Under the pieces are notes generated by a model, which searched no databases, had not been told where the DNA came from, and worked only from the letters and a program-made list of their open reading frames with translations. A stretch of DNA of 44,626 bases from the NCBI GenBank assembly GCA_002104945.1, contig MCFH01000112.1:1-44626 (forward strand). Direction: 5' to 3'. Position numbers and translations under genes: made by a program. Of the stretch, positions 1-29,191 are shown in pieces; positions within the stretch are counted from its first letter, which is position 1, and each line of letters starts with the position of its first letter. This stretch comes from Piromyces finnis finn (Eukaryota; Fungi; Neocallimastigomycota).

Positions 1-13
1 ATCATATGTAAAT

Positions 14-676: not shown

Positions 677-685
677 TCAAAATCA

Positions 686-5404: not shown

Positions 5405-6505
5405 TACGCTACTCACATAAAAACATGATAAAAACTAGCTGAATAAACACGACTTAACCCATAGTAACTTATAATAAAAATAAACAATAATAACCCTTAA
5501 AGATGAATGAATAATAATTTTATGAAAATATAACCCTTTCTTTAAATAAATAATATTATCTTTATTATATAATAAATTCTGAGTAAAAACGACCTAATAG
5601 TGATAATAATAAAATAAATTATTAAATAAAATAAATTATTAAATAAAATAAAACGACTTAATCCAATAATGTACTAAAATAATAAAATAATAATAAATAA
5701 ATAAAAATGAATAAATAAACTAAAAATAAAATGATATACATCAAATTATTAATTCTAGTGTTTATCCAAGTGTTCTTTAGAAATACTCTTAAACTTATAA
5801 ATTAAAAAAATAACTAATTGAGTAATTATTACTAAAATGATAAACTTAAAACCTGGAAATAGAACAATAATAACAATTCCAAAGATAAAATACAGAACTC
5901 TTTTATGTTTCTGTATAAAATGAGTGTTTATAATAATTGATACTTTTAATATTTTAATTTTGTTAAATTTTTATTTTAATTTTATTTTAATTTTATTTTA
6001 ATATTATTTTAATTTTAAATTTTAATTATTTTATTCAAGGTATTATACATTTAATGATAGTCAATGATAATTTATAATAATTTTTCTAAATTTAAACATT
6101 TTGAAGTAATAAGAAAATCAAATAAGTAATATTCTATAATATTTTATAATACTAAGACATAATTTTAATTTATTCTTTTAATTTTAATAAATAATAACAA
6201 TAGTAATAATAACATTTAATAGTTAAAAATAATAATACATGTAATAAATGAAAATGTATAAAAGGAAGATAAAATTCTTCTTTATAAAGGCGGACAATAA
6301 ATAGACAATAAATAAATTATAAATATAATAAAGAGATAATTTAAACATAATAAAAAGAGTTTATTTTCGAGTTTTTGAGTGATTTATTTGTTAATTATAA
6401 AACATATTTTATTTTATTTTAAATTTATTGTTTCATCATAAATATTAGAATTTATTATTTATCAAAAATATTATATTATTCAAAAATATATCGGTCAACG
6501 CATCA
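5402..6505 (+). repeat. 3' LTR, family A (A1, 1104 bp)
   Basis: Follows the PPT. Termini TGATACG...GCATCA. Homologous copies at 28052, 29141, 35767 (-) and 36783 (-). Confidence 0.93.
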
Positions 6506-6509
6506 TTCT

Positions 6510-7137
6510 TGGTACACCACATTCAGAAAAATGCAATAAATCCATATATTTGGTAAATGAAATAACCCTTATAATATATATGGATTTAAATATTTTTATT
6601 TAATAAATTTATATAACGATAGTAATAATAAGAATGGTAAATTAAATTAAATTAATAACTTATAAATAATTTATTAAAGTAAAATAAACTTTTTATAATT
6701 TAATATAAGGATGATAAAAATATAATTATATAAGGAAGAGAAAGACGCGTATATATATAAAAAAGAAAAGAAGAGTTTTTAGTTTTTAGTTAGTTTTTAG
6801 TTAGTATATATTAGTTATATTATAAATAAAATAAAGATAAGGTGATAATAATAGAAGAATAAATAATATTATTGTTAGATTTAGTGAAGGAATTAATAAT
6901 AATATTAGTTTATTTTCTAAGATTATACCTATTTTTAAAACAAATAATAATATAAAATAATAATAAATAATACTTATAAATAATAAAGCTTGTAATAAAA
7001 ATAATAAAATAATAAACAAAATAATAAAATAATATATAATAAAAAAATATTCATCTAGAATATAAATTTGTTATTTATAACTGTTGTAGTGTCCCAAACA
7101 ATAAAGAAAAAGGTACTTATAATAAAATTCTGTACCA
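6510..7137 (+). repeat. 5' LTR, family B
   Basis: TGGTACA...TGTACCA, 628 bp, followed by the PBS. Confidence 0.96.
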
Positions 7138-7143
7138 AGTTTT

Positions 7144-7162
7144 TGGTGGAGAATCCGGGCGT
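7144..7162 (+). promoter_or_regulatory. Primer-binding site complementary to the tRNA-Ala 3' end
   Basis: TGGTGGAGAATCCGGGCGT. Its complement ends ...CCCGGAUUCUCCACCA, giving C72-C71-U70, the G3:U70 alanine identity pair. It lies 6 nt after the LTR. Confidence 0.85.
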
Positions 7163-7214
7163 ACAACAAGCAAATTTATGAAAATAGATGAGTAATAGAT
7201 AGAGATTATACAAA

Positions 7215-7254
<40 letters not shown>

Positions 7255-7632
7255 TTTATAATAATAATAATAATAAATTAATATATATAATAATAATAAT
7301 AAATTATATATAACTATTAAATTATATTATTTTAATTATTTAATTTGAAGAATACACATATTTCCACCAACCGCTTTGGGTAGATCGCGGCTGTTGAATG
7401 AAAAACTTCTTAGCTAAAGGCCTTCTACACCAAAGTCGATAATATAAGTAGTTCTAAGAATTAAATTTATTAAAATAAAATAGTTTATATTTATATATAA
7501 AATATACCATAAATTTATAATTAATACGCGTGTTAATAATAATAAAAATATAAAAATATATACAATTAGAAATCACGCGATATAATAAACAGACAAACAA
7601 TAATAAGAGTAATATTAGTTCATCTTTGAGAA

Positions 7633-8667
7633 ATGGATTTAACTACTATACGTAAAGAGGTTCCCAAACTTGATAACTATGGGAAGAATGTATGGGAATG
7701 GGTAGTGGATATGAACGACTTTTTGGATCTCTATGATTTAATTGAGCCTAGACAAGTGTATAATTGGGCTATGGCCGCAGTAGAGTCTGATACCAAAGAA
7801 GTTGTAAGAAGGTTAAAAATAAGAAGAAATAATGAAGTCCATTACCCATCACTTAAAGAAATACAAATAGCTATCGAAGAAGATATGAAGATTACTGAGG
7901 GAGATAAATGGACCCTACTTAGAAACATGAATATTGCGGAAGGAGAAACTATAAAAAAGTTTAATTATAGATATCGAAACTTGTATCATAATCTAAGTAG
8001 GGAATATCAGAAATTAATAACAGTGAAGGAATATAGAGACTCTATTAGTGCTCGTGTCTATCTGTGCTCCCAGGTAGGAATGTCTGATTGTGAGAACCTA
8101 CAAGAAGCTTACAAAATTGCTGAACGAGCTGAAAATACTGAGAGAGAAATTAAAGAGAAAAACAATGAACAAGTTAACCAAAGGAGAGGAACAAGGAATG
8201 TTACTTTAGCTGCCCAAAGTGATAATGTTCTATTAAATCATCCGATTTATACTGGACTTATGAATGATAATAAAGAGGATTCGCATAATTCATATTACGA
8301 CAGGAAGAATATTAACCAGAACTTTAGATATCCATATTTCAATAGAACTAGGACTAGCTACCGCAGAGTTTATGGAGGACAGTCTAATTGGAGCAACACC
8401 AATGGTTATGTAAATCAACAGAATGATAATAATAGTAGAATGGGTTTAATCCCTTATCAAGGCATGAATAAATCTTATTCTACAACAAGAAATGCGGAAA
8501 AAGGGGTATCCCTGATAGAACCAACCAATGCTATTCCAAGGGAGATTGATGAAAGAAATTCCGATATAAAATGTTTCAGATGTGGACAAAATGGACACAA
8601 ACGTATAGAATGTCCATATACTTTTAAACAACTTGCCGAAATGGAAGAAAAGGGGCTTTTAAACTAA
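7633..8667 (+). CDS. gag: Gag, 344 aa (capsid-like N-terminus, CCHC zinc knuckle)
   Basis: ORF after the PBS and leader; CFRCGQNGHKRIEC knuckle. Confidence 0.95.
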   Translation: MDLTTIRKEVPKLDNYGKNVWEWVVDMNDFLDLYDLIEPRQVYNWAMAAVESDTKEVVRRLKIRRNNEVHYPSLKEIQIAIEEDMKITEGDKWTLLRNMNIAEGETIKKFNYRYRNLYHNLSREYQKLITVKEYRDSISARVYLCSQVGMSDCENLQEAYKIAERAENTEREIKEKNNEQVNQRRGTRNVTLAAQSDNVLLNHPIYTGLMNDNKEDSHNSYYDRKNINQNFRYPYFNRTRTSYRRVYGGQSNWSNTNGYVNQQNDNNSRMGLIPYQGMNKSYSTTRNAEKGVSLIEPTNAIPREIDERNSDIKCFRCGQNGHKRIECPYTFKQLAEMEEKGLLN

Positions 8668-8692
8668 ACTCTGGGAGAAGGACAACTCCCAG
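8658..8692 (+). promoter_or_regulatory. -1 programmed ribosomal frameshift signal (element B, unit 1)
   Basis: T-TTA-AAC in the gag frame (8658-8664), 6-nt spacer, 7-bp stem CTGGGAG/CTCCCAG. The -1 frame is stop-free into pol. Confidence 0.9.
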
Positions 8693-8711
8693 TAAACAAA
8701 CCAATCTATCG

Positions 8712-11700
8712 GTGGTACAACCAACGGTAGATAAAACCATAATTAATACTAATACCTCAAATAATAATTACCGAGAGCCTTCGTCTATAACCTTGGTTGC
8801 AACGAAGAAATCAAAAGACACAAATAGCAAAGCTAAAAATGCGCACAAGGAAACAACCAGCCAAATAAAGAGAATGCATGAGAATAAACTACAGCGAAAT
8901 CCTATGCCTATTAAAACTGCTGCTATGAAGTATAATGAGCAATTAGATAAGAGAAGGAATTATATAAATAATAATGATAAGGAGATGAACTTGGACACTT
9001 CTGAAATTATAACAATAGATTCTGATGGAAAATCAACCAAAGATGAAAATAAGTTAATAGAAACCATAGGAAAAGAAGAAATGGAAGAGGAGTTGGATGA
9101 TATAAATGAAGAATTGGGCAAGAATGATAAGAGCAAAGCAACAACTCCTAAGGAAAATAGAAAATTAAACAAAGTAGAGAAGTTAGAACACTTGGATGTA
9201 TCCTATCTAAATGATAAAAGAATAGAGAATGTAAAGAAGAAAAATCGGGAAGAAAGAAATGCTGAAATGAAGAAACAAGAAAGGAAGGAAATAGATAAAA
9301 TAAACCCTAACCCACCGCAAGAACAAATTTTAAATATTGAAAAACACATACGTCTAATGGATGGTTTTGAAGAGTTCAAGGTAGATGATTTAGTTAAAGA
9401 AGTAGCTTCAACAGAAGTGGTAACAAAACTTGTGAATTTATTAGACCTGTTCCCAAAATTCCGCACAGCATTTGCCCAGAAGTTGAAATTAACACCAAAA
9501 TTCAAAAATGCAGTAACAAATGCTGTCACCTTGCTTGGAGAACATAAAGTTGTCAAAGTCCGCGGGAAGGTAGAAGATGTGGAGGCTGAAATATTCTTAG
9601 ATTCATGTGCCAGCGTTAATATGATAACAAAGTCAGCACTCCGCAAATTTAGGATTCACAAGCAGCCAGTAGGAAATATTACAGAGACAATATTTCAGGC
9701 ATATTCCAATACTTCATCGAATACGGATATATATAAACTAAAAATCACAATTGGCGAGAAGACTTTCACAGAGATATTTAGGGTTATCGAAAAAGATGAT
9801 ATCTTTGATATATTAATTGGAATCGATTCCCTTAAAAGGAATAGGTTTAGTTTAAATTTTGTGGATGATAATTTATATTACATTGATAAAAACAATTCTC
9901 CCATGAAAATTGCAGACCTCCATTATGATGTAAATCTCCAGGAATCTAAAGGGGAGGATTCAGAGGAGGAAACTATAGAAGAAACACCAATGTTAATAAC
10001 AGTAGCGATGTCTACCCAGAATGAAGGAAAAGAAGGAACGTTAGAAACAAAAGAAAATATTATTAATAATATTGTGAATAAAATTCCGAAAGATATTAGA
10101 GATGTAGTAAGAAAGCTATTTGATAAATTTAATCATGTTATCGCTGTTAAAACTGACGATCTGAGTAGAACAAAATTACTACCTCATCGTATCAGGTTGA
10201 AGCCAAACTCGTTTCCTTTTAAACAACGAGCATATAGGCTATCAAAAGTGCAAGCAGATGCATTGAAAGAGGAGTTAACCAAGCTGATTAAGAATAAATT
10301 AATTGAACCATCCCATTCATCGTGGTCGTCGCCTGTAGTCTTAGTGCCTAAGAAAAATGGAAAATACCGAATGTGTGTGGATTATCGACGCTTAAATGAA
10401 TGTACAATAAAGGATTCCTACGCTCTACCACTAATTGATGACATACTGTGCTACGTAGGTAAGAAAGCTGTTTTGACTACTATGGATTTGTTTTCGGGTT
10501 ACCACCAAGTTCCGATGTATCCTGAGGATGAAGATCTTACATGTTTTACCACTATATATGGAAACTATAATTTCAAGGTAATGCCTTTCGGGTTATGTAA
10601 TGCCCCAGCTACCTTCCAGAGAGAAATGAACAGGATTTTCTTCGACCTTATTGGGAAGTGTGTCTTTATTTATATTGATGATTTGATAGTCTTTTCCAAT
10701 ACAATGGAAGAACATATTAGAGATTTATCAAAGGTTTTTAAAATACTCAGGGAAAATGGTTTAAGAATCAACATTGAGAAGTGTCACTTCTTTCAAGAAG
10801 AAGTAGAATTGCTAGGCCATGTATTATCTAAAGAAGGAATTAAACCAATTCCGGGGAAAACGCAGGTAATCATGAACTGGCTACCACCGAAAAATGTTTC
10901 TCAATTGCGTTCGTTTTTAGGGGCTGTAAGTTACTACCGAAAATTTATTGATAAATTTGCACAATATGCTAAACCATTATTTAAGTTATTAAAGAAAGAC
11001 GAAGAGTTCAAATGGAGTCCAGAGGCGAATAATTCATTTGAAATCTTAAAATTAAGACTAATAGAAGCTCCGATATTAATGCCACCGGATTTTGATAAAC
11101 CATTCAAGATTAGAACAGATGCATCACGTAATGGGATAGGTGGAGTGATTTTACAAATAGATGAAGATGGAATGGAGAAACCACTACACTTTGTAAGTAG
11201 GACACTGAATAAATCAGAAGAAAACTATAGTGTAACAGATTTAGAAGGGACAGCTGCATATTATTGTTCTAGGAAATTCAAGCATTATATAGTAGGAAAT
11301 ACGTTGGAAACTGAATTAATCACCGACCATAAACCGCTAGTTGGATTGATTAATAATAGCGAACCAACCAATAATCGACATCTTAAATGGGTCACTACGT
11401 TTAGTATATTAAAAATCAAAGTGTTGTACGAAGAAGGAAAGAAGAATGTAATAGCTGACGCTCTATCAAGATTGACCAGTAAGGAAGAAAGTCAGTTAGC
11501 ACCAAGACCAAGTCATAACAAACAAACAATCAACGTGATCGTGGAGAACAATAGTAATACTACTACTAATAATAAAATAAGTGAGAATAATAATCAATAT
11601 AAAAATATAAATGATTTTATTAATAGGAAACTTATAACTATGGATGGAATACAATACTACAAGAGTAATGGGAAACTAAGAAGAATTATAGATGATGACG

Positions 11701-12740
11701 AAGAAAAATTCAGACTAATTGAAGCCGCTCATTCTATCGGACATGAAGGTATATACAAGACCTATCATAGGCTAAAGAAGGAATTTTATTGGAAGGGCAT
11801 GAATAACGATATAAAAATTTATATTAAGTGTTGTCCAAGATGCCAACAATTCAAGCCACAGAAATCTAACCTTTTTGTTGAAAGCATACCTACAAAGCCA
11901 GGCTTACCATTTTCAAGAGTAGGTCTTGATCTGGTAGGTCCGTTGCCAATAACAAATAAAGGCAATAAATACATCATTGTCCTAGTGGACTATTTAACTA
12001 AATGGGTGGAGGCTGAGGCTTTGGAGAATATAGAATCCGATGATGTCATTGACTTTTTGAAGAGGGTATTTTCTCGCCATGGTATTCCAGAGGTTCTAGT
12101 AACAGACAATGGGCCTCAATTTAGATCTGATAAGACGAAGGCATTCCTGGATTTACATGACGTGTACGTCCAATACGTATCGACATACCACCCTGCATCT
12201 AATGGAGAAGTGGAAAACCGGAATAAGGAGATAATCAAATATCTGAAACTATTAGGTAATGAAGAAGATGAATGGGATGAAATACTGCCTAGTGCATTAT
12301 GGGCTCTTAGAACTTGTAAAAACGAAATTACAAAGTTCAGCAGCTTTGAACTACTATATGGACGCAAAGATCTACAACCCTTCGAACTATCTTTGATGAA
12401 AGACAGGAATAAGTATGAGAACGAAGAGGAATATTGGATACAGAAGTTCGTGAGACATCATAAGTGGATACAAGAAGCCATCGATAATATTGAAACAGCC
12501 AATAAATTATGGAGTGACCGGAGACGACAGAGTAAACGAATGAGAGCCGCATATAAACCTGGAGATTTAGTATTAGTTAAAGTATTCAATAGAAGGAAAC
12601 TGGACCCTTATTTTACTGGACCCTTAAAAATCATAAAGAAAGAATTTAATACAGTTACAGTTTGTGATCCTATTTCAGGGGAAATTGCAGAACGGAATAT
12701 TCACTTAAAGAATATAATTCCGTATTTTTCTGAATTGTAA
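8712..12740 (+). CDS. pol: Pol polyprotein (PR-RT-RH-IN); the true start is probably the frameshift at 8658, not GTG 8712
   Basis: FLDSCAS, YRMCVDYRRLN, YIDD, KIRTDAS, H-H-CPRC, GLDLVGP/VTDNGPQF/GEVENRN, FTGPL. No chromodomain. Confidence 0.97.
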   Translation: MVQPTVDKTIINTNTSNNNYREPSSITLVATKKSKDTNSKAKNAHKETTSQIKRMHENKLQRNPMPIKTAAMKYNEQLDKRRNYINNNDKEMNLDTSEIITIDSDGKSTKDENKLIETIGKEEMEEELDDINEELGKNDKSKATTPKENRKLNKVEKLEHLDVSYLNDKRIENVKKKNREERNAEMKKQERKEIDKINPNPPQEQILNIEKHIRLMDGFEEFKVDDLVKEVASTEVVTKLVNLLDLFPKFRTAFAQKLKLTPKFKNAVTNAVTLLGEHKVVKVRGKVEDVEAEIFLDSCASVNMITKSALRKFRIHKQPVGNITETIFQAYSNTSSNTDIYKLKITIGEKTFTEIFRVIEKDDIFDILIGIDSLKRNRFSLNFVDDNLYYIDKNNSPMKIADLHYDVNLQESKGEDSEEETIEETPMLITVAMSTQNEGKEGTLETKENIINNIVNKIPKDIRDVVRKLFDKFNHVIAVKTDDLSRTKLLPHRIRLKPNSFPFKQRAYRLSKVQADALKEELTKLIKNKLIEPSHSSWSSPVVLVPKKNGKYRMCVDYRRLNECTIKDSYALPLIDDILCYVGKKAVLTTMDLFSGYHQVPMYPEDEDLTCFTTIYGNYNFKVMPFGLCNAPATFQREMNRIFFDLIGKCVFIYIDDLIVFSNTMEEHIRDLSKVFKILRENGLRINIEKCHFFQEEVELLGHVLSKEGIKPIPGKTQVIMNWLPPKNVSQLRSFLGAVSYYRKFIDKFAQYAKPLFKLLKKDEEFKWSPEANNSFEILKLRLIEAPILMPPDFDKPFKIRTDASRNGIGGVILQIDEDGMEKPLHFVSRTLNKSEENYSVTDLEGTAAYYCSRKFKHYIVGNTLETELITDHKPLVGLINNSEPTNNRHLKWVTTFSILKIKVLYEEGKKNVIADALSRLTSKEESQLAPRPSHNKQTINVIVENNSNTTTNNKISENNNQYKNINDFINRKLITMDGIQYYKSNGKLRRIIDDDEEKFRLIEAAHSIGHEGIYKTYHRLKKEFYWKGMNNDIKIYIKCCPRCQQFKPQKSNLFVESIPTKPGLPFSRVGLDLVGPLPITNKGNKYIIVLVDYLTKWVEAEALENIESDDVIDFLKRVFSRHGIPEVLVTDNGPQFRSDKTKAFLDLHDVYVQYVSTYHPASNGEVENRNKEIIKYLKLLGNEEDEWDEILPSALWALRTCKNEITKFSSFELLYGRKDLQPFELSLMKDRNKYENEEEYWIQKFVRHHKWIQEAIDNIETANKLWSDRRRQSKRMRAAYKPGDLVLVKVFNRRKLDPYFTGPLKIIKKEFNTVTVCDPISGEIAERNIHLKNIIPYFSEL

Positions 12741-12765
12741 TAAAAAAAAAAAAAAATATTTAAAA

Positions 12766-12807
12766 TTGGACTTCAAGGGACGAAGTCCAAACTAAGGCGG
12801 GATGTCT
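12766..12807 (+). promoter_or_regulatory. Pre-PPT hairpin and polypurine tract (B unit 1)
   Basis: TTGGACTTC-AAGGGAC-GAAGTCCAA (9-bp stem), then AAGGCGGGATGTCT before the LTR. Confidence 0.85.
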
Positions 12808-13435
12808 TGGTACACCACATTCAGAAAAATGCAATAAATCCATATATTTGGTAAATGAAATAACCCTTATAATATATATGGATTTAAATATTTTTATTTA
12901 ATAAATTTATATAACGATAGTAATAATAAGAATGGTAAATTAAATTAAATTAATAACTTATAAATAATTTATTAAAGTAAAATAAACTTTTTATAATTTA
13001 ATATAAGGATGATAAAAATATAATTATATAAGGAAGAGAAAGACGCGTATATATATAAAAAAGAAAAGAAGAGTTTTTAGTTTTTAGTTAGTTTTTAGTT
13101 AGTATATATTAGTTATATTATAAATAAAATAAAGATAAGGTGATAATAATAGAAGAATAAATAATATTATTGTTAGATTTAGTGAAGGAATTAATAATAA
13201 TATTAGTTTATTTTCTAAGATTATACCTATTTTTAAAACAAATAATAATATAAAATAATAATAAATAATACTTATAAATAATAAAGCTTGTAATAAAAAT
13301 AATAAAATAATAAACAAAATAATAAAATAATATATAATAAAAAAATATTCATCTAGAATATAAATTTGTTATTTATAACTGTTGTAGTGTCCCAAACAAT
13401 AAAGAAAAAGGTACTTATAATAAAATTCTGTACCA
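12808..13435 (+). repeat. Shared central LTR, family B
   Basis: Preceded by the PPT and followed by the PBS; no TSD at either side. Confidence 0.96.
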
Positions 13436-13441
13436 AGTTTT

Positions 13442-13460
13442 TGGTGGAGAATCCGGGCGT
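13442..13460 (+). promoter_or_regulatory. PBS (tRNA-Ala), unit 2
   Basis: Identical to 7144-7162. Confidence 0.85.
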
Positions 13461-13511
13461 ACAACAAGCAAATTTATGAAAATAGATGAGTAATAGATAG
13501 AGATTATACAA

Positions 13512-13551
<40 letters not shown>

Positions 13552-13932
13552 TTTATAATAATAATAATAATAAATTAATATATATAATAATAATAATAAT
13601 AAATTATATATAACTATTAAATTATATTATTTTAATTATTTAATTTGAAGAATACACATATTTCCACCAACCGCTTTGGGTAGATCGCGGCTGTTGAATG
13701 AAAAACTTCTTAGCTAAAGGCCTTCTACACCAAAGTCGATAATATAAGTAGTTCTAAGAATTAAATTTATTAAAATAAAATAGTTTATATTTATATATAA
13801 AATATACCATAAATTTATAATTAATACGCGTGTTAATAATAATAAAAATATAAAAATATATACAATTAGAAATCACGCGATATAATAAACAGACAAACAA
13901 TAATAAGAGTAATATTAGTTCATCTTTGAGAA

Positions 13933-14967
13933 ATGGATTTAACTACTATACGTAAAGAGGTTCCCAAACTTGATAACTATGGGAAGAATGTATGGGAATG
14001 GGTAGTGGATATGAACGACTTTTTGGATCTCTATGATTTAATTGAGCCTAGACAAGTGTATAATTGGGCTATGGCCGCAGTAGAGTCTGATACCAAAGAA
14101 GTTGTAAGAAGGTTAAAAATAAGAAGAAATAATGAAGTCCATTACCCATCACTTAAAGAAATACAAATAGCTATCGAAGAAGATATGAAGATTACTGAGG
14201 GAGATAAATGGACCCTACTTAGAAACATGAATATTGCGGAAGGAGAAACTATAAAAAAGTTTAATTATAGATATCGAAACTTGTATCATAATCTAAGTAG
14301 GGAATATCAGAAATTAATAACAGTGAAGGAATATAGAGACTCTATTAGTGCTCGTGTCTATCCGTGCTCCCAGGTAGGAATGTCTGATTGTGAGAACCTA
14401 CAAGAAGCTTACAAAATTGCTGAACGAGCTGAAAATACTGAGAGAGAAATTAAAGAGAAAAACAATGAACAAGTTAACCAAAGGAGAGGAACAAGGAATG
14501 TTACTTTAGCTGCCCAAAGTGATAATGTTCTATTAAATCATCCGATTTATACTGGACTTATGAATGATAATAAAGAGGATTCGCATAATTCATATTACGA
14601 CAGGAAGAATATTAACCAGAACTTTAGATATCCATATTTCAATAGAACTAGGACTAGCTACCGCAGAGTTTATGGAGGACAGTCTAATTGGAGCAACACC
14701 AATGGTTATGTAAATCAACAGAATGATAATAATAGTAGAATGGGTTTAATCCCTTATCAAGGCATGAATAAATCTTATTCTACAACAAGAAATGCGGAAA
14801 AAGGGGTATCCCTGATAGAACCAACCAATGCTATTCCAAGGGAGATTGATGAAAGAAATTCCGATATAAAATGTTTCAGATGTGGACAAAATGGACACAA
14901 ACGTATAGAATGTCCATATACTTTTAAACAACTTGCCGAAATGGAAGAAAAGGGGCTTTTAAACTAA
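13933..14967 (+). CDS. gag: Gag, 344 aa, unit 2
   Basis: Same as unit 1 except CTG>CCG (L>P) at 14363. Confidence 0.95.
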   Translation: MDLTTIRKEVPKLDNYGKNVWEWVVDMNDFLDLYDLIEPRQVYNWAMAAVESDTKEVVRRLKIRRNNEVHYPSLKEIQIAIEEDMKITEGDKWTLLRNMNIAEGETIKKFNYRYRNLYHNLSREYQKLITVKEYRDSISARVYPCSQVGMSDCENLQEAYKIAERAENTEREIKEKNNEQVNQRRGTRNVTLAAQSDNVLLNHPIYTGLMNDNKEDSHNSYYDRKNINQNFRYPYFNRTRTSYRRVYGGQSNWSNTNGYVNQQNDNNSRMGLIPYQGMNKSYSTTRNAEKGVSLIEPTNAIPREIDERNSDIKCFRCGQNGHKRIECPYTFKQLAEMEEKGLLN

Positions 14968-14992
14968 ACTCTGGGAGAAGGACAACTCCCAG
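14958..14992 (+). promoter_or_regulatory. -1 frameshift signal (B unit 2)
   Basis: Copy of 8658-8692. Confidence 0.9.
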
Positions 14993-15011
14993 TAAACAAA
15001 CCAATCTATCG

Positions 15012-19040: not shown

Positions 19041-19065
19041 TAAAAAAAAAAAAAAATATTTAAAA

Positions 19066-19107
19066 TTGGACTTCAAGGGACGAAGTCCAAACTAAGGCGG
19101 GATGTCT
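19066..19107 (+). promoter_or_regulatory. Pre-PPT hairpin and PPT (B unit 2)
   Basis: Copy of 12766-12807. Confidence 0.85.
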
Positions 19108-19735
19108 TGGTACACCACATTCAGAAAAATGCAATAAATCCATATATTTGGTAAATGAAATAACCCTTATAATATATATGGATTTAAATATTTTTATTTA
19201 ATAAATTTATATAACGATAGTAATAATAAGAATGGTAAATTAAATTAAATTAATAACTTATAAATAATTTATTAAAGTAAAATAAACTTTTTATAATTTA
19301 ATATAAGGATGATAAAAATATAATTATATAAGGAAGAGAAAGACGCGTATATATATAAAAAAGAAAAGAAGAGTTTTTAGTTTTTAGTTAGTTTTTAGTT
19401 AGTATATATTAGTTATATTATAAATAAAATAAAGATAAGGTGATAATAATAGAAGAATAAATAATATTATTGTTAGATTTAGTGAAGGAATTAATAATAA
19501 TATTAGTTTATTTTCTAAGATTATACCTATTTTTAAAACAAATAATAATATAAAATAATAATAAATAATACTTATAAATAATAAAGCTTGTAATAAAAAT
19601 AATAAAATAATAAACAAAATAATAAAATAATATATAATAAAAAAATATTCATCTAGAATATAAATTTGTTATTTATAACTGTTGTAGTGTCCCAAACAAT
19701 AAAGAAAAAGGTACTTATAATAAAATTCTGTACCA
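19108..19735 (+). repeat. 3' LTR, family B
   Basis: Ends TGTACCA, followed by TSD TTCT. Confidence 0.96.
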
Positions 19736-19738
19736 TTC

Positions 19739-21695
19739 TGATAAATAATGAAATTAATAAATATAAAATTATTATTATACCTGATTTTTATGTGAAGATA
19801 TTAACTGGATTTAAAACAAATTCAGATAATATCTATAATTAATTAAACATAATAATTATAATTAAATAATTTCAATAATTATTTTAAAACACTTTTAAAA
19901 GTCACCTTTTAAATTTTGATTCAGTGAAAGGGTTATGATTTCAAAAATTTAATATCAATACACTATAACCCTTAACCAAAAATAAGCAAGTACGAAATAA
20001 GGTGTAACTCGCCAAAAACGATCGCTACGGCTGTAAGTGCTACGGTGATGAAACTAGGTTTATTGGAAAGCTTAGGAAGAAAGCTACAATTTGGTACAAT
20101 CGCGGTCCTTCTAACTGATCATTTAAGGAAGTTATGATCATTTAAAGATTTTATTAGGTAAATTAAAATCAATATGATATCAAGTATGGATCATAAATAT
20201 TTCTTATGACTTGATGAAATTAAAAATATATCAATAGGAATTTTAGTTATATTAATTTAATTAATGATAACGATTGTTACTAAAAATAGAACTAGACCCA
20301 TTTAGGTGTAACAGTTAACACCTATGAATTAAATAATCTTAATTATTATAAAATAGGTTAACGGCAAGTTTTATTAGAAATAATTTTGAAAATAATAATT
20401 ATTTAATTATAACAAATATGTTATGGTAATATCAATTAATAATGATGAATTATTAATTGAATAGTTTTTATAATTACTAATTAGGATCAACTGTTTAAAT
20501 GATTAATCATATGTTTATTTTATTTTATGTCATGACAAACAAACAAACAAACAAACAAACAAACAATCTTATTACTTATTTAATTATATTACTAATATAT
20601 TACATGTAATACTTTATTCTTATTAATATCAATTTAATAATCTGAACAAAGAATATAAAAGAGAATGAATTGAATTCGATTTTAATTCTTTGTAAAGATT
20701 ATAGTTATAATCTTAATTATATAGTTACTTATAATATCATTTATATTATTAATATTAAATAAATAAAAAATTTATAAAAAGTTATTTTAAAGTAAATATA
20801 AATTTTTCATTTTTCATTTGGGAGTTTAAGGTGTTATTTTATAATTAAATTTAATTTCTTAAAAAACATTTTTACTATATAATTAATAATATTCTGACCT
20901 GGCCGCATAACCAAACCCAAAAACTTAACATTTTAAGTTAACCCTAAAAGTAACTTAAAACAAGTTATAGTTTAATTAAGTACTTTACCAAAATTCTTAA
21001 ATAAAATTAATCCTAAACACTGCATATATTTTGATTATTGAAAGAAAATAATAAACTTTAATTAATCGAGATCAAAATATATAACTTTTGTTAAATTAAT
21101 TGTTAAATTAAATATTTAATAACTTCGTTAGTAAATTACACTTTAAAAGTAAACAAATATAATAATTCATGTTATAAAATAATATAATTAAACACCTTTA
21201 TTAAAACATTAAAAATAATTATTACTTTAATTAATTGTAAAATAAACAACTTTTTATATTCTTTAACTTTTAATTATTTCTTTTATTGTTATTTCTAATT
21301 ACTTTTATTATTTTTATTGTAAATAGTTATTAATTTTATTGCTTTAATGTAAATAGTTTAAATCTAAAAGAAAATATAAATACATGTAAATATTCTTATT
21401 TTAATCATTATTATTATTATTAATAAAGAAATATTATATAGTTAGATTAATATTTTATAATTTTAATAATCACTTTTATACTTAAATAAATAAAAATTTT
21501 AAATATTTAAATATTAGAAAAACAAGTGTTTCTAATAAAACCATTTAGTGTTTTAACAAAACAATTTTATTAATTTTTATAAAAACGATTTTAAATCTTA
21601 ATCACTATAACTTATATAGTTATAACAAAAGATATAATATAATAATCACTTTTTGAAGTAAAATTCAAAATTAAGATTATTATCAAATTATATCA
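19739..21695. repeat. Putative solo LTR, family K (~810 bp), interrupted by LTR C1
   Basis: TGATAAATAATGAAATT start resembles family J (25107). Ends ATATCA. Left flank TTC, right flank CTTC. Single copy in the window. Confidence 0.6.
19791..20930. repeat. Solo LTR, family C (C1, 1140 bp) with 5-bp TSD TTTTA
   Basis: TGTGAAG...TTAACA. TTTTA at 19786-19790 and 20931-20935. Second copy at 29192. Confidence 0.8.
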
Positions 21696-21700
21696 CTTCT

Positions 21701-22115
21701 TGTGATACGAAGAAAAATATTATCTTAATTCTATAAATGAATATAGAAAGTGATAATATTTGTATCTAAAATTTAATAAATAAAAATAAATAAGAAAATA
21801 AAAATAGAATGAATGATTTTTATACTTGTTCATTTGCAAGTCTTTGTTAGTTTAAAATATAAAATTATTTTATTTAATTATAAAGTTTTAATATTTAATA
21901 ACTCTTGTATTATTAAATATATATATGTTATGGTTTAATACATCTTGAATGTATGTAAATATAATCACAACTATTATTTTAATAAAATTTAATATTATTA
22001 TCTAATTTTACTGGATTATTAGGAACATCTTTTAAAATAAAATAATTCTATCACTATTTATACAAAATTATTATTTTAAAGTATAATTAAAAACAAATAT
22101 AAACTATTTAATTTA

Positions 22116-22146
<31 letters not shown>

Positions 22147-22220
22147 TTTACATTTATAATTTTTAATTTAATAATTTTATACATGTTAATTATTTTAATT
22201 TTTAACTATCTGTGTTTTAA

Positions 22221-22266
<46 letters not shown>

Positions 22267-22319
22267 GTTATTATTATTATTATTATAAATTCATAATTTA
22301 TAAATTTAATTATTTATCA
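21701..22319. repeat. Solo LTR, family D (D1), containing an (ATT)n tract
   Basis: (TG)TGATACGAAG...TTATCA. Homologous to 39509-40022. TTCT flanks both sides if the extra TG is included. Confidence 0.75.
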
Positions 22320-22324
22320 TTCTT

Positions 22325-23099
22325 TGATACAAGATGCATAGAAAAATATAATATTTTAAATATTTTATGAATAATATCTAATCCTTTTATAAATTGTATA
22401 TCAATTACTAGTGTTAATAATAATTAAACTATATTAGTATAAATTATTATGACGCAAATATTACACATATATTAGAATAATTAATTACACAAGAAATGAA
22501 AAGATATAAAAATAGTGAAAAAGAACAAGATATAAAAAAAAAAGAGAGAAAACTTTTCGTTTATAAATAATATTTGATATTTTAGTTTTAAGTATAAGCT
22601 CTATTTTATTTTATTTTAGTTACAGTTTATTTTAGTTTAGTTTTAGGTCACTAATTACGTATTTAGCATTTATTATATTTAATTCAGTTTAAAATATTAA
22701 TTATAAAAGAAAAGAATAATTATTGTTTATTTTTATTATTTCAAAAAGTTATATTTTATTATTAATAAGAATTTTATCGACATATTTTTATATTTACATT
22801 TTATATTCAACTATTTATATTTATTAAACAATAACTTTCGACTCTACTAGTATTGAATGTTATTAATGTTATAATCATAATAATAATAATAATTAAATAA
22901 AAAAACTTTAAACCAAAATCTATTTAATTATATTATTATAAAATTTATTATTTTTATTATTTGTTTTTATTATTTATTTTTATTATTATAAAATAGAAAT
23001 AAATACAATATTATCTAATATATTATTCAACTCTCATTCCCTATTGCTAACGTTCACAATTATATTTTATTTATGGTGTTTTTAAAATATATTGCATCA
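22325..23099 (+). repeat. 5' LTR, family E (E1, 775 bp)
   Basis: TGATACAAG...GCATCA, followed by the PBS. Copies at 25589 and 37915 (-). Confidence 0.9.
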
Positions 23100-23106
23100 T
23101 AAAATT

Positions 23107-23125
23107 TGGTGGAGAATCCGGGCGT
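23107..23125 (+). promoter_or_regulatory. PBS (tRNA-Ala)
   Basis: TGGTGGAGAATCCGGGCGT, identical to family B; 7 nt after the LTR. Confidence 0.85.
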
Positions 23126-23255
23126 GGTAATACTGAAGTAATATGAAAACAGTTATAATAATATGAGATTTATAAAGATAGGAAAACATAATAATAAATA
23201 TTATAATATATATATATAAATATAAAAAAAAAAGAGAAAAGAAAAGAAAAAGAAA

Positions 23256-24387
23256 ATGGATCCGTTTGAAATAATAAACATGCTTCCATTGTTGGATGAC
23301 TTTGGAAAGGATATTGATAATTGGATCCAAGAATTTAGTGAAATTATGGAAATGTATGAAATAATTAGTCCAAGGCGAATATTTACTTTTATAAAGGAAT
23401 GTGTTAATGAAGATGTAAAGTATATACTCGAAGAATATAAAATTAATTATGGAAAATATCCAACCTTTGATGGTATACAAAAAATAATTGAAGAATATTT
23501 AAATATAACACAAAATGATAAATTCAATATTTTATTATCATTGAAAATAAAAAATAATGAAAGAATAAAGCTATTTAATTATCGCGTAAGAATAAAATAT
23601 AATTTATTAGATGAAAATTATAAAAAAACTTTTTAATGTTAATAATTATGTTGAAATGCTAAAAAGTAGACCATATATTTATTCAAATGTTCTATTAAAT
23701 GATTGTAAAACTCTTGAAGAAGCTTTTAAAGTTGCAGAGTTAGCTTCAAAAGTTGAGGAATATAATGTATTTAATAATGAATTAAATTATTCTTTTGGTT
23801 CAATTATGAATATTAATATGACAGCTTTAAATCCAAGAATTAATGATATTAATATTAATAGTAATGATGATTGTGAAAAAAATATGGATTTATCAAATGT
23901 AAATAATGAAAGAGAAAATATAATAGAAGATGAAAATGAAGCTGATACATGTAATGAAAATTTTAATAATAAATATGAGGACATGGAATGTAATAATAAT
24001 TTATTAAATTCAATAAACCTAAGTGATTGTGATGAAGATAAAATTCTAAAACTTCAAGATAAAATACTTAATAATAAAATATTAGAAGATTATAAATGTT
24101 TACGTAATAAAAAGATTAAAAAACGTTTAGAAAGCATAATTAATGGAGTTGATATTGAAGATAAAAATACCAATGATGAAAATAATATTTATAAAAATAA
24201 TTATATTAGAGATACTTTAAAGAATCATTGTCAATTATTAATAGTTAATCATAAATATAATAAAACAGAAATAGATACAATGCAAAGTAAAATAAAAGAA
24301 AAATTTTCATTTAATTATGGAAATAATAGAAAGGATACCAAAATGTTAGAAAGGAACTATAGGTATAAGAGAAAAAGAAAACGATAA
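23256..24387 (+). CDS. Gag capsid-like protein (~376 aa if a 1-nt A insertion at 23622-23628 is corrected); no zinc knuckle; acidic N/D/E-rich tail ending in RYKRKRKR
   Basis: The two overlapping ORFs align continuously with B Gag (LDDFGKDIDNW/LDNYGKNVWEW, YPTF/YPSL, FNYRVR/FNYRYR, DCKTLEEAFKVAE/DCENLQEAYKIAE) across the break. Confidence 0.8.
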
Positions 24388-24474
24388 ATACTTGAAATAT
24401 AAATTTTATTTTTATTTATTATATATTTAGTATAAGAACAATATAAAAACCTATAATTTTATTAATCCTTTGTT

Positions 24475-24514
24475 GACTTCAAGGGACGAAGTCTCATCTA
24501 AAGTGGGGGCATCT
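24475..24514 (+). promoter_or_regulatory. Pre-PPT hairpin and PPT
   Basis: GACTTC-AAGGGAC-GAAGTC, then AAAGTGGGGGCATCT before TGATAC. Confidence 0.85.
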
Positions 24515-24925
24515 TGATACGTGACGAACAGAAAATACTACTTTTGGTAGAAATTCCAGGTTAATTCATATAAGGGTTAAGATAATAATAAATTAATAAT
24601 AACTTTAATTAATAATGAAATTAATTAATATGAAATTAATTAAAAAAAAATATTTAATATGTACTAATATAAATATAATTAATAATTAAATAATTAAAAT
24701 GATGTTCTTGATTTTGTAATTAAGTTCCAAAGATAATAAGATATAATAAAATGAGAAATTTAGTAATAGTTTAGTAATATTAATAGTGAATAAGTAGTAT
24801 ATTTATATAGGAAAGATAGTTATTTTAAATATGTATTATTAATAATAAATAAATGTAAAAATACTAATTATAATATATTTTAATAAAGATAAATATTTAA
24901 TAATAATAAAAGGCTTATTTTGTTT

Positions 24926-24956
<31 letters not shown>

Positions 24957-25103
24957 TAAATAATAATAAATAAGTAAATAAATATATAATAACTATATCA
25001 CATAATTATTAATAACTGGAATATATTATTTCAGCAATATTCCTTATTACCACAACCTCAAAATAAATAATAATATTATGATATTTTATTTTATAACGTA
25101 TCA
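24515..25103 (+). repeat. 3' LTR, family F (F1, 589 bp)
   Basis: TGATACGTG...GTATCA after the PPT; homologous to 26407-28047 but not to E apart from weak terminal similarity. Confidence 0.88.
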
Positions 25104-25106
25104 TCT

Positions 25107-25583
25107 TGATAAAGAATGAAATTTATAAATAATGAATTAATAGAATAGCTGATTTTAAAATTATATAAACTTAATATAAATTAAAATAATAGTAAATAAT
25201 CAAAATAATATAAAATATAAATGTTTAATTAAATTTTAAAAATGTAAAATATAAACAAACTTAAATGTAATTATTTATTATAAATAGAAATAGAAAATAT
25301 TATTTTTAAAGATTGTTACTAATTAGCCAGGAAAATTAGAATATTTTAAAATTATAATAAATTAATATATTTTTTTTATAATACATAGCGAGATGTATTA
25401 TATATTTATTTTAAATAAATAAACTAATATTATAAAACAAGATGTGTTTTTAAAACTTTAAATTATATTTAATAATTATATATACTTGTAGAATGAGCAA
25501 GTAAAAATAAGTCATTCAAATACACACCAAATATACCACTTTCTAAGCTTATTTAGAATTAAGGTATATTTGAACGTGTGTCA
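25107..25583. repeat. Putative solo LTR, family J (477 bp)
   Basis: TGATAAAG...GTGTCA. TSD TTCT on the right (25584-25587) and on the left after in-silico removal of the E1-F1 element. Confidence 0.65.
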
Positions 25584-25588
25584 TTCTA

Positions 25589-26402
25589 TGATACAAGATG
25601 CATAGAAAAATATAATATTTTAAATATTTTATGAATAATATCTAATCCTTTTATAAATTGTATATCAATTACTAGTGTTAATAATAATTAAACTATATTA
25701 ATATAATTTATTATGACGCAAATATTACACATATATTAGAATAATTAATTACACAAGAAATGAAAAGATATAAAAATAGTGATAAAGAACAAGATATAAA
25801 AAAGGGAGAAAACTTTTCATTTATAAATAATATTTGATATTTTAGTTTTAAGTATAAGTTCTATTTTATTTTATTTTAGTTACAGTTTATTTTAGTTTAG
25901 TTTTAGGTCACTAATTACGTATTTAGCATTTATTATATTTAATTCAGTTTAAAATATTAATTATAAAAGAAAAGAATAATTATTGTTTATTTTTTTTATT
26001 ATTTCAGAAAAGTTATATTTTATTATTAATAGTAATTTTATCGACATATTTTTATATTTACATTTTATATTCAACTATTTATATTTATTAAACAATAACT
26101 TTCGACTCTACTAGTATTGAATGTTATTAATGTTATAATCATAATAATAATAATAATTAAATAAAGAAACTTTAAACCAAAATCTATTTAATTATATTAT
26201 TATAAAATTTATTATTTTTACTATTTATTTTTATTATTTATTTTTATTATTTATTTTTATTATTTATTTTTATTATTTATTTTTATTATTATAAAATAGA
26301 AATAAATAAAACATTATCTAATATATTATTCAACTATCATTCCCTATTGCTAACGTTCACAATTATATTTTATTTATGGTGTCTTTGAAATATATTGCAT
26401 CA
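25589..26402 (+). repeat. Solo LTR, family E (E2), TSD TCTA
   Basis: Homologous to E1; TCTA at 25585-25588 and 26403-26406. Confidence 0.9.
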
Positions 26403-26406
26403 TCTA

Positions 26407-28047
26407 TGATAGGTGACGAAGAGAAAATACTACTTTTGGTATAAACTTCAGGTCAATTTTGTCACGAATACTAGTGAAATCTACAATTTCAAGATCACTT
26501 GAAATTGTGAAATTACTTATAAAATTTTAAAATCAACAATATTTTATTTCCAAATAAATTATAAAATTATATTAAGTAATATTTAAAAAATTTAGAAAAG
26601 GTTAAGATATGACCTTAACCCTTAATAAATTTTATAACAAATAACTTTAACCCTTATCGTCAAAATTAAATAAGGAAAAACAAGCGTATCTCCTTAACGA
26701 ATGACGATTTTTGGGAAATTATGGTTGGGAAATTATGGGCTCGTTAGAAAGCCACACTCGAGATAAACAATATATCTTAAAATCAGGTCAATATCTCTGC
26801 TGGTTCATGAGATATTCCAATTTAAAGATATTTTGTTAGTAATGATTAATTGTTTAATTGTTTATTCAGAGAATGATCACCCCTGATGTATCAAACATAA
26901 ATCATTCACTCAAAAGGATAAAAATTATTGATTTAATTAAATTAAAATTATTTTCCGGAACTAATTAACTTTATTTTATAATAATCATTTCAATAACATA
27001 ACTTATAATCTTTGAATTAGAAGATTATAATTATTAATATTATTATATACAATGAATTATATTATAATTAAGAAATAATTGATATTATAAATATTATAAA
27101 CAATAATTATTTTTAATAATTAGTAATAAGTCTTAAGTTTAGTTTTAGTATTATAAAATATATTATGAATATAATCATGTATTAAAAAGTTATTTTATTA
27201 TTAAATGTAAAATTACAAATAGTATAAATAGTTTAGAATAGTTTATGAAATTAAAATCTTTGCAAAGATTATTAACAATAATTAATGCTTAATAAGTATT
27301 ACTATTAAATAATCTTATTATTATATTCTTTATTAATATTTTATTAAAATAAAATAAAAAGAAATTATTTTAACCACAATATTTAATTTAACTATTCGTT
27401 TATAAAACAATTAAGATTATTTTAATAAAGCATTTTTTCTAATCTAGTTATCTTTTAATCTTTTATTTAATTTAATATTTTAATATTAAATTATAAGTTC
27501 AGTAAAACTTTTACATCAATTCACATATGGATTAAGATAATAATAAATTAATAATAACTTTAATTAATAAAAATTATTTAATATATACATATATACTAAT
27601 ATAAATATAATTAATAATTAAATAATTTATAATAATGTTCTTGATTTTATAATTAAGTTCTAAAGATAATAAGATATAATAAAATAATAAGTGAGAAGAA
27701 TTTTATTAATAGTTTAGTTAGTAATATTATTAGTGAATGAATAGTTTATTTGTATAAGAAAGATAATTATTTAAATATGTATTATTAATAAATAAATGTA
27801 TAAATACTAAGTATAATATATTTTAATAAAGAAAAATATTTAATAATAATGAAATATTTCTTTTGTTTATATATAATAATAATAATAGTAATAATAATAA
27901 CAATAATAATAAATAAATAAATAAATAAATAAATAACTATATCTCATAATTATTAATAACTGGAATATATTATTTCAGCATAATTCCTTATTACCACAAC
28001 CACAAAATAAATAAAAGCATTATGATATTTTATTTCATAATGCATCA
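26407..28047 (+). repeat. Solo LTR, family F (F2), interrupted by G3
   Basis: TGATAGGTGACG...GCATCA. Colinear with F1 once 26460-27515 is removed. Confidence 0.85.
26460..27515 (+). repeat. Solo LTR, family G (G3, 1056 bp)
   Basis: TGTCACG...TTTTACA, the reverse complement of G1/G2. TSD TCAAT(T), with extra T residues on the left. Confidence 0.88.
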
Positions 28048-28051
28048 TTTG

Positions 28052-29136
28052 TGATACGCTACTCACATAAAAACATAATAAAAACTAACTGAATAAACAC
28101 GACTTAATCCATAGTAACTTATAATAAAAATAAACGATAATAACCTTAAAAATGAATGAATAATAATTTTATGAAAATATAACCCTTTCTTAAATAAATA
28201 ATATTCTCTTTATTATATAATAAATTCTGAATAAAAACGACTTAATAGAGATAATAATAAAATAAATTATTAAATAAAATAAAACGATTTAATCCAAAAA
28301 TGTATTAAAATAATAAAATAATAATAAAATGGTATGAATCAAATTATTAATTCAAGAGTTTTACCCAAGTGTTCTTTAAAAATTCTTTTAAATTTATATA
28401 TACAAATTAATAAATAAATAATTGAGTAATTATTACTAAAAGTGATAAACTTAAAACCTGGAAATAGAACAATAATAACGATTTTAAGATAAAATACAGA
28501 ACTCTTTTATGTTTCTGTATAAAATGTGTGCTTATAATAATTGATACTTTTAATATTTTAATTTTATTTTAATTTTGTTATAATTTTATTTTAATTTTAT
28601 TTTAATATTATTTTAATTTTAAATTTTAATTATTATATTCAAGGTATTATACATTTAATGATAGTCAATGATAATTTATAATAATTTTTCTAAATTTAAA
28701 CATTTTGAAGTACTAAGAAAATCAAATAAGTAATATTCTATAATATTTTATAATACTAAGACATAATTTTAATTTATTCTTTTAATCTTAATAAATAATA
28801 ACAATAGTAATAATAATATTTAATAGTTAAAAATAATAATACATGTAATAAATGAAATGTATAAAAGAAAGATAAAATTCTTCTTTATAAAAATCGGACA
28901 ATAAATAGAGAATAAAAAAGACAATAAATAGATAATAAATAAATTATAAAATATAATAAAGATTTAATTTAAAACATAATAAGAGTTTATTTATGAGTTT
29001 CGAGTGATTTATTTGTTAATTATAAAACATATTTTATTTTATTTTATTTTAAGTTTATTGTTTCATCATAATAATATAGAATTTATTATTTATTAAAAAC
29101 ATTATATTATTCAAAAATATATCGGTCAACGCATCA
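28052..29136 (+). repeat. Solo LTR, family A (A2), TSD TTTG
   Basis: Homologous to A1; TTTG at 28048-28051 and 29137-29140. Confidence 0.92.
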
Positions 29137-29140
29137 TTTG

Positions 29141-29191
29141 TGATACGCTACTCACATAAAAACATAATAAAAACTAACTGAATAAATACGA
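29141..29191 (+). repeat. 5' fragment of a family A LTR (A3), cut by C2
   Basis: First 51 bp of the A LTR. Confidence 0.85.

Follow-up and report, generated by a model that had tools for sequence, protein, structure and literature searches.

The window, by which we mean the whole 44,626-nucleotide stretch of Piromyces finnis DNA that was analyzed, holds a train of LTR retrotransposons whose LTR ends abut from position 5402 to 28047, with spacers of 3 to 7 nt, every one of them a piece of one short sequence. A script was used to check the coordinates, and the termini of each family were taken as the points where alignments to its other genomic copies begin and end. About 10 LTR retrotransposons integrated serially onto the same few bases, so that a preliminary description of the locus as a junction-by-junction stack of unrelated LTR families on one short site holds. 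Element A, at the left edge and on the forward strand, is represented by its internal region (1–5401), in which Pfam recognizes a gag with a zinc knuckle and a pol with reverse transcriptase, RNase H, and integrase, and by its 1104-bp 3′ LTR (5402–6505, forward strand, TG..CA), which matches at 100% identity the element's 5′ LTR, located on another contig (C162:571570-572673). The spacer TTCT (6506–6509) serves as a target site duplication (TSD) copy for both A and element B, a forward-strand LTR-internal-LTR-internal-LTR tandem (6510–19735; LTRs at 6510–7137, 12808–13435, and 19108–19735) whose repeats are 99.93% identical across 6.9 kb and in which each internal region keeps intact gag and pol ORFs. 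The next spacer, TTC (19736–19738), is completed by the first T of the following LTR to give the right-hand TSD of B, TTCT.

That following LTR had been read as a single element, K, and proves to be composite: a forward-strand solo LTR, Kh (19739–21695), is split into two parts (19739–19790 and 20936–21695) by a nested second-tier solo LTR, Km (19791–20930, forward strand, TG..CA), which has a 5-bp TSD, TTTTA, and lies 52 nt inside the end of Kh that faces the tRNA gene described below. The spacer beyond Kh is CTTCTTG (21696–21702), made up of the Kh duplication CTTC, a remaining T, and an extra dinucleotide TG at the end of element D; approximately 40 genomic D copies begin at the equivalent of 21703 and not of 21701, which fixes this spacer at 7 nt. 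The TTCT duplication previously assigned to D therefore stands if D is taken to include the extra TG and is lost if D starts at 21703. D is a solo LTR (21703–22319) whose true orientation is reverse, with its 3′ end toward the tRNA, since in other D copies the primer-binding site (PBS) follows the 21703-type end and the polypurine tract (PPT) precedes the opposite end. Both D and L, the tRNA-proximal element introduced below, occur in the genome in both orientations, and uniform orientation was dropped as a mechanistic argument because D and L are found inverted.

To the right of D, the spacer TTCTT (22320–22324) leads into a gag-only element on the forward strand (22325–25103) in which an E-type 5′ LTR (E1, 22325–23099), a PBS, a 1.4-kb internal region, and a PPT are followed by an F-type 3′ LTR (F1, 24515–25103), and which, judged from its sequence, is probably a recombinant of two adjacent stacked elements. 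The spacer TCT (25104–25106) and the first T of the solo LTR J (25107–25583, forward strand) give the duplication TCTT, and the spacer TTCTA (25584–25588) separates J from E2 (25589–26402, forward strand), a solo LTR 97% identical to E1, with its duplication TCTA at 26403–26406. The forward-strand F2 LTR (26407–28047) contains a nested second-tier solo LTR, M (26460–27515, forward strand), that was missing from the earlier parse and lies 53 nt inside the tRNA-facing end of F2. Because the left flank of F2 is TCTA and its right flank TTTG, F2 is probably an ectopic recombinant LTR that bridges two stacks. The train was thought to stop at F2, and in fact it continues on the forward strand from 28048 to 30178, through TTTG, a solo LTR of the A family (A2, 28052–29136), a second TTTG, the start of an A-like LTR (29141–29190), and a truncated Km-type LTR (Km2, 29191–30178).

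Junctions of 2-LTR circles were considered as an origin of the 4-nt spacers and were discarded: the bases between LTR and PBS (6–7 nt, for example AGTTTT), joined to the TCT that follows the PPT, would yield longer junctions that differ from those observed. A segmental-duplication origin for the K|D and D|E junctions was set aside as well, the same family pairs being found elsewhere with the spacers ATTTT, TGTT, and ATTTT as against CTTCTTG and TTCTT here; because these pairs recur with different spacers, the two junctions are taken as independent events.

Neither ARAGORN nor Rfam, the latter at E values up to 5, detected a tRNA or other RNA polymerase III (Pol III) gene within the window or next to A. 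The tRNA gene and most of the stack lie on separate contigs and are joined via a 7.7-kb overlap, in which window positions 1–7699 correspond to C162:574868-582566. The LTR part of C162 differs from the window there by about 5%, so that the end of C162 is either poorly polished or a second copy. To the left of A on C162 there is a complete Ty3/gypsy element, L, and directly beyond it a tRNA-Ser(UGA) gene (C162:558448-558529, minus strand) with its 5′ end toward the window, called by both ARAGORN and Rfam (L001:2448-2529, 58.5 bits). L begins 11 nt past the tRNA gene, has 619-bp LTRs that are 100% identical, and carries the 5-bp duplication GTTCT on both sides; with its own nested element it now forms a 13-kb block between the stack and the tRNA. 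No A or B box was seen on reading the terminal sequence of L. The domains RVT_1, RT_RNaseH, Integrase_H2C2, and rve follow in that order in each of A, B, and L, with SH3_Tf2-1 also in L.

The right flank of L reads GTTCT-TCT and then runs into the TG of A, from which it follows that the end of A lay 14 nt from the tRNA gene before L arrived. It had been predicted that the sequence upstream of A would read CTTCT, and C162 indeed reads GTGACAGTTCTTCT immediately before the TG of the matching 5′ LTR. The original 15 nt upstream of the tRNA-Ser gene read TTCACAGTTCTTCTA, and every target duplication in the stack (GTTCT, CTTC, TTCT, TCTT, and TCTA) is a substring of it, A, B, Kh, J, and E having duplicated 4 bp and L 5 bp. 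When the elements are removed one TSD at a time, the tRNA-facing termini fall at 11 nt from the tRNA for L, 13 nt for Kh, 14 nt for A, B, D, and J, and 15 nt for E1, E2, and F2. The three datable LTR pairs, those of L (100% identity), A (100%), and B (99.9–100%), are all nearest the tRNA, solo LTRs being undatable.

The stack is very probably the outcome of repeated position-specific integration upstream of one Pol III gene, the tRNA-Ser. The abutment of LTR with LTR then follows secondarily from integration that is oriented, Ty3-like, and directed by Pol III genes: serial insertion of this kind beside a tRNA gene must leave abutting LTR ends, and targeting of LTR ends is therefore unnecessary to account for the stack. 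Each new Ty3/gypsy-type element would land 11 to 15 nt from the tRNA and displace the older ones outward, in the order F2, E2, J, E/F, D, Kh, B, A, and last L, an order that the chain of duplications permits and in part requires, and the arrival of L would have separated the stack from the tRNA. The 5-bp-TSD families M and Km would have used a register approximately 65 nt upstream and hence inserted within whichever LTR was then nearest the tRNA, and later recombination among stacked copies would account for the tandem of B, the chimeric E1-F1, and the discordant flanks of F2. By analogy with Ty3 integrase and TFIIIB (Brf1/TBP), we infer that the integrases may be tethered to the Pol III initiation complex. 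The earlier propositions that integration at this site was repeated and independent, with 1-bp shifts of the target, and that the site renews itself after each insertion, are both supported. Some features fit the tRNA anchor less readily, namely that the tRNA and most of the stack are linked only across a contig overlap, that D needs the extra TG for its duplication to fit, that the flanks of F2 are mismatched, that no anchor was found for the TTTG sub-stack, and that the age polarity comes from three elements only.

The pattern extends beyond this locus. The motif pair GCATCA-N(0-30)-TGATAC has 168 matches as compared with 40 for a control pattern, and among 100 matches listed, 24 have spacers of 3 to 5 nt (12 of them exactly 4 nt), which bears out the genome-wide excess of short spacers that the preliminary description anticipated. 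Among 100 A-family 5′ ends listed, 58 abut another LTR end, 13 abut tRNA genes called by ARAGORN at 12 to 16 nt, 7 abut degenerate tRNA-like units that have a B box and a run of Ts, and 1 abuts unrelated DNA. The 13 tRNA-facing ends span tRNA-Pro, Ser, Cys, Gly, Met, Thr, Ala, and Trp genes. At the 3′ ends, none of the 100 listed abuts a tRNA, and 7 to 9 abut unrelated DNA. Of the 17 tRNA-Ser(UGA) copies, 13 to 14 have an LTR end 11 to 17 nt upstream, drawn from at least 10 LTR families, and approximately three sites are apparently empty.

There is also a second tier of 5-bp-TSD LTRs, Km and M, approximately 65 nt upstream of tRNA genes. Insertions of Km or M in this second window, tens of bases upstream and comparable in effect to those of TRE5 or Ty1, lie 63 to 66 nt from tRNA 5′ ends at four sampled loci (L004, L006, L013, and L015), which are few cases, and the Km and M copies in the window, being 52 to 53 nt inside the LTR then nearest the tRNA, correspond to 65 to 68 nt from it.

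It is also conceivable, though rather unlikely, that resident LTR ends sustain or attract integration besides the tRNA anchor. The LTRs have a conserved stretch in their first 50 nt, which may, for instance, have evolved to seat TFIIIB, such that the site stays live after each insertion, or to act where the tRNA has decayed. A role of this kind would be compatible with the seven A-family ends at degenerate tRNA-like units and with the unanchored TTTG sub-stack, and if resident LTR ends do sustain integration, stacks could grow without an intact tRNA gene.

The stronger proposal, made in the preliminary description, is that the integrases recognize resident LTR ends or LTR-flank junctions, the junction being a safe harbor independent of any tRNA gene. 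Most sampled LTR termini do abut another LTR terminus at 3 to 5 nt, the window itself lacks a tRNA, and A2 is flanked on each side by TTTG and then by an LTR end. Against this, the tRNA-Ser gene, with the stack 11 to 15 nt upstream of it, stands at the young end; LTR-end targeting requires similar neighbors at both ends of an element, whereas the A family is asymmetric, with 20 of 100 5′ ends listed facing a tRNA or tRNA-like unit at 12 to 16 nt versus 0 of 100 3′ ends listed, and with unrelated DNA almost only at 3′ ends; and the high occupancy of tRNA-Ser(UGA) copies at 11 to 17 nt (13 to 14 of 17) points the same way. Integration directed by tRNA genes predicts LTR abutment, whereas recognition of LTR ends does not predict the tRNAs, and we regard the latter as improbable.

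Still less probable is an origin without serial integration, by segmental duplication, recombination, or repeat mis-assembly. The contig break does fall within the stack, the overlapping contig ends disagree in their LTR part, recombinant structures are seen (the B-B tandem, E1-F1, and F2), and tandem copies of whole stack-plus-tRNA units exist at other places in the genome. However, different families with full TG..CA termini are joined in the stack by 4-bp duplications that form one coherent chain, the same family pairs occur elsewhere with different spacers, and similar stacks are present on many contigs. A local hot spot, with integrases favoring sequences like CTTCTA in this very AT-rich genome, is scarcely credible: every spacer of this stack does derive from one pyrimidine-rich 6- to 9-mer, but the spacers of other stacks are quite unlike it (for example TTTG, ACCT, AAAT, TATT, and CAAT), no motif is common to the sequences upstream of occupied tRNA genes, and the variation of spacers from locus to locus shows that the elements do not take their cue from local sequence.

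Targeting of tRNA genes is a textbook case of how transposons reach safe sites, known in budding yeasts, one fission yeast, and dictyostelid amoebae. In the literature searched we found no description of tRNA-directed LTR integration in such an early-diverging, AT-rich fungus, which is probably an anaerobic gut inhabitant. Here it would involve at least 10 LTR families and two distance registers in an extremely AT-rich genome, with a clear orientation rule for family A and stacks more than 10 elements deep that keep the order of insertions. Such stacks provide a natural record with which to date transposition bursts and to ask if Pol III tethering is ancestral or convergent. They also carry a caution: a preference for LTR ends as targets cannot be deduced from matching TSDs and abutting LTRs.

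Double insertion at one site, described in Drosophila, yields transposable element dimers and tandems separated by TSDs, and the B-B tandem and pairs of A elements 4 nt apart fit such double insertion followed by LTR-LTR recombination; unlike the Drosophila dimers, site reuse here has an identifiable cause, the tRNA gene, and involves many families. Ty3 makes a 5-bp target duplication. This Saccharomyces cerevisiae element of the Metaviridae integrates at Pol III transcription start sites via TFIIIB and inserts in both orientations (PMC5911963). The P. finnis elements resemble it in being LTR retrotransposons with the order protease, reverse transcriptase, RNase H, and integrase, in having a target position, immediately upstream of tRNA genes of various isotypes, that shifts by no more than a few bases, and in accumulating solo LTRs at that site. 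They differ in that most families duplicate 4 bp and only L 5 bp, in that family A has a strong bias for pointing its 5′ end at the tRNA, and, in our comparison, in placing at least 10 families on one site in stacks at least 10 deep. The targeting may or may not share a common descent with that of Ty3, since by phmmer the A integrase is at least as close to foamy-virus integrase as to Ty3 (a PDB sequence search gave ordinary integrase homology). In Dictyostelium, DGLT-A inserts 13 to 33 bp upstream of tRNA genes and TRE5 approximately 44 to 54 bp upstream in an oriented manner (PMC5911963, PMC5006619, PMC4600332). P. finnis likewise has two distance classes upstream of tRNA genes in one genome and an orientation rule for some elements; its elements, these, and Tj1 of Schizosaccharomyces japonicus seem to have converged on tRNA genes as safe sites. 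Unlike DGLT-A and TRE5, both tiers here are LTR elements, with the outer one (63 to 68 nt) landing inside an LTR of the inner tier, and whereas the hosts of DGLT-A, TRE5, and Tj1 have compact genomes, the host here is a very AT-rich fungus rich in transposable elements.

The 44.6-kb window, at the start of contig C16 (12-35% GC in the window; assembly of 56.5 Mb in 232 contigs), carries Ty3/gypsy-type gag-pol genes and a train of adjoining LTRs, whose junctions were read in the sequence and whose coordinates were then set by script. With the spacer that follows each, these are the 3' LTR of element A (5402-6505, TTCT), B (6510-19735, TTC), K (19739-21695, CTTCTTG), D (21703-22319, TTCTT), E1-internal-F1 (22325-25103, TCT), J (25107-25583, TTCTA), E2 (25589-26402, TCTA), F2 (26407-28047, TTTG) and A2 (28052-29136, TTTG), after which the start of an A-like LTR (29141-29190) is fused to a truncated LTR ending at 30178. 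Element B is an LTR-int-LTR-int-LTR tandem with 99.93% identity across 6.9 kb. The family ends of the stacked LTRs are genuine, since alignments to other genomic copies begin and end at the same positions. The junction-by-junction layout of the preliminary description stands, with four corrections. K is a host LTR (Kh) with a nested solo LTR, Km (19791-20930), which has a clean 5-bp duplication, TTTTA; F2 likewise contains a nested LTR, M (26460-27515); D begins at 21703, as in ~40 genomic copies, and therefore the extra TG precedes it here; and D is inverted in the window, with a primer-binding site after the corresponding end in other D copies. The extra TG occupies 21701-21702, before the terminal TGATACG of D, and in sampled locus L022 another D copy is separated from a J end by TG alone.

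Because the window begins at a contig end, the left flank of A was read on another contig, C162, whose last 7.7 kb (C162:574868-582566) overlap window positions 1-7699. The two versions differ by three indels in the 5.4-kb internal part of A, by ~5% in the LTR part, and by an A|B spacer that is one base shorter in C162; the LTR mismatch may reflect either poor polishing at the contig end, which it would fit, or a second allele. The 5' LTR of A is present on C162 and 100% identical to the 3' LTR in the window, and it is preceded by ...GTTCTTCT, which includes the CTTCT that had been predicted upstream of A. Further left is the end of another LTR. Element L, between A and a tRNA-Ser(UGA) gene, is a complete Ty3/gypsy element with identical 619-bp LTRs and GTTCT on each side (boundary mapping and alignment). 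Its pol is broken by a nested chromovirus-like, chromodomain-bearing Ty3/gypsy element (L001:6247 to L002:2459; C162:562247-568459), whose two 605-bp LTRs match at 100% identity and whose target site duplication (TSD) of 5 bp is GGCAT; from its position inside pol, the family of this nested element is not aimed at tRNA genes. The tRNA-Ser(UGA) gene itself is 11 nt left of L, with its 5' end toward the stack (ARAGORN; Rfam, 58.5 bits; sequence read). The tRNA-L-A-B part and the remaining stack are on two contigs, linked only by the overlap.

Outward from the tRNA, the arrangement is TTCACAGTTCT [L] GTTCT-TCT [A] TTCT [B] TTC [Kh] CTTCTTG [D] TTCTT [E1-F1] TCT [J] TTCTA [E2] TCTA [F2]. The insertion history was reconstructed by taking out each element with one copy of its own duplication, which is consistent for all except D: the TSDs are GTTCT for L, TTCT for A, TTCT for B (including the first T of Kh), CTTC for Kh, TCTT for E1-F1 (including the first T of J), TTCT for J and TCTA for E2, and D has TTCT only if the extra TG is counted in D. 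After these removals one sequence is left, TTCACAGTTCTTCTA, followed by F2. The logic of the duplications makes Kh older than A and B, and J older than E1-F1. At insertion, the tRNA-facing end was 11 nt from the tRNA for L, 13 nt for Kh, 14 nt for A, B, D and J, and 15 nt for E1, E2 and F2. The three elements nearest to the tRNA (L, A and B) are the three with datable LTR pairs, which are 99.9-100% identical. A second tier is formed by Km, inserted 52 nt within the tRNA-facing end of Kh and then ~65 nt from the tRNA, and by M, inserted 53 nt within F2 and ~68 nt from the tRNA; at four sampled loci, Km or M ends are 63-66 nt from tRNAs.

The preliminary description had taken LTR-end junctions as the target, and the excess of short spacers that it proposed to look for is indeed found genome-wide: a generic LTR-end/LTR-start pattern with a gap of 0-30 nt gave 168 matches overall versus 40 for the reversed control, and among 100 matches listed the spacer was 3-5 nt in 24 and exactly 4 nt in 12. 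Across 240 kb of sampled TE-dense loci, the termini of A, D, J, Kh and E nearly always adjoin another LTR terminus, and since the spacers vary between loci these abutments are independent events; where a tRNA gene is present in such loci, an LTR terminus is 13-15 nt upstream. The tRNA-Ser gene 11 nt beyond L and the asymmetric flanks of the A family argue instead that the stack is Pol III gene-directed.

This asymmetry is the prediction of oriented insertion beside tRNA genes, in which the 5' end of A would face the tRNA or a younger insertion, and its 3' end either an older insertion or the DNA that was upstream of the tRNA to begin with. Flanks of 100 listed ends of each kind were sorted by eye, with ARAGORN confirmation for the tRNA subset only. 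Thirteen 5' ends are 12-16 nt from confirmed tRNA genes of eight isotypes, 7 face degenerate tRNA-like units (a B box plus a T run) and 58 adjoin an LTR end, with spacers of 3 nt (13), 4 nt (32), 5 nt (5) and 8 nt (7); the others are 12 tandem-array copies, 9 internal 3' LTRs and one copy next to unrelated DNA. The same search found no tRNA next to the 100 listed 3' ends, ~70 of which adjoin LTR ends and 7-9 unrelated DNA, while 11 are followed by a primer-binding site and 11 are array copies. At five loci (L034, L035, L038, L044 and L046), A-family 5' ends face sequences without an ARAGORN tRNA call, in which a B-box-like GGTTCGA/GTTCAA ~60-70 nt off is followed by a T run. These sequences may represent tRNA genes that have decayed, or SINE-like Pol III units, used as targets.

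When the 17 genomic copies of tRNA-Ser(UGA) were sorted by eye, 13-14 had an LTR end 11-17 nt upstream, from at least 10 LTR families, and ~3 were apparently empty sites. L-family ends are 11-12 nt from these copies, and this register, closer to the tRNA, accounts for the 8-nt L/A spacer that recurs in several independent loci. The best reading of the stack is Ty3-like integration at a specific position upstream of a Pol III gene, a site that many families have used again and again, with an outer register that serves families with 5-bp TSDs.

Later recombination among stacked copies plausibly made the B-B tandem and the E1-F1 chimera, for which matching TSDs are uninformative because all TSDs in a stack are alike, and it plausibly gave F2 its mismatched flanks, if a second, TTTG-based stack was joined and its anchor deleted. 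Tandem arrays with a period of ~5.57 kb occur at L004 (C79:826001-836000) and also on C47 and C74. Their unit comprises an A LTR, a second LTR and an L fragment, the last two each with M nested inside, plus a tRNA-Cys gene; as the repeated unit holds an entire stack together with tRNA-Cys, such units are being duplicated as blocks. A rough first look at the whole genome with a tRNA model gave ~2900 candidates, with many equal-scoring copies on TE-dense contigs, which suggests that tRNA gene numbers were inflated together with the stacks. Elsewhere in the window, a 342-aa ORF (31566-32594, minus strand) has a weak BspA-type leucine-rich-repeat match, and a 560-bp inverted repeat (32461-33016 and 35020-35581, 98.9% identical) overlaps its start region with one arm. 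A second run of adjoining LTRs, in the opposite orientation (36783-44626), comprises A (36783-37910), a spacer, E (37915-38674) and further LTRs, along with two tandem M copies and an M-type element whose ORF encodes an integrase plus SH3_Tf2-1; the anchor of this run would be to the right, beyond the window end.

By analogy with Ty3, where integration involves the Pol III initiation complex (PMC5911963), we infer that the integrases may be tethered to that complex. The A integrase scores lower against Ty3 (E 1.7e-20) than against foamy-virus integrase (E 6e-31; phmmer), which indicates only general retroviral-type homology. Our literature search found no paper tying tRNA-directed integration to anaerobic gut fungi. 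Integration of this kind is known for Ty1-Ty4, Tj1, DGLT-A and TRE elements (PMC5911963, PMC5006619, PMC4600332), and our finding falls within it; we do not claim a new targeting principle.
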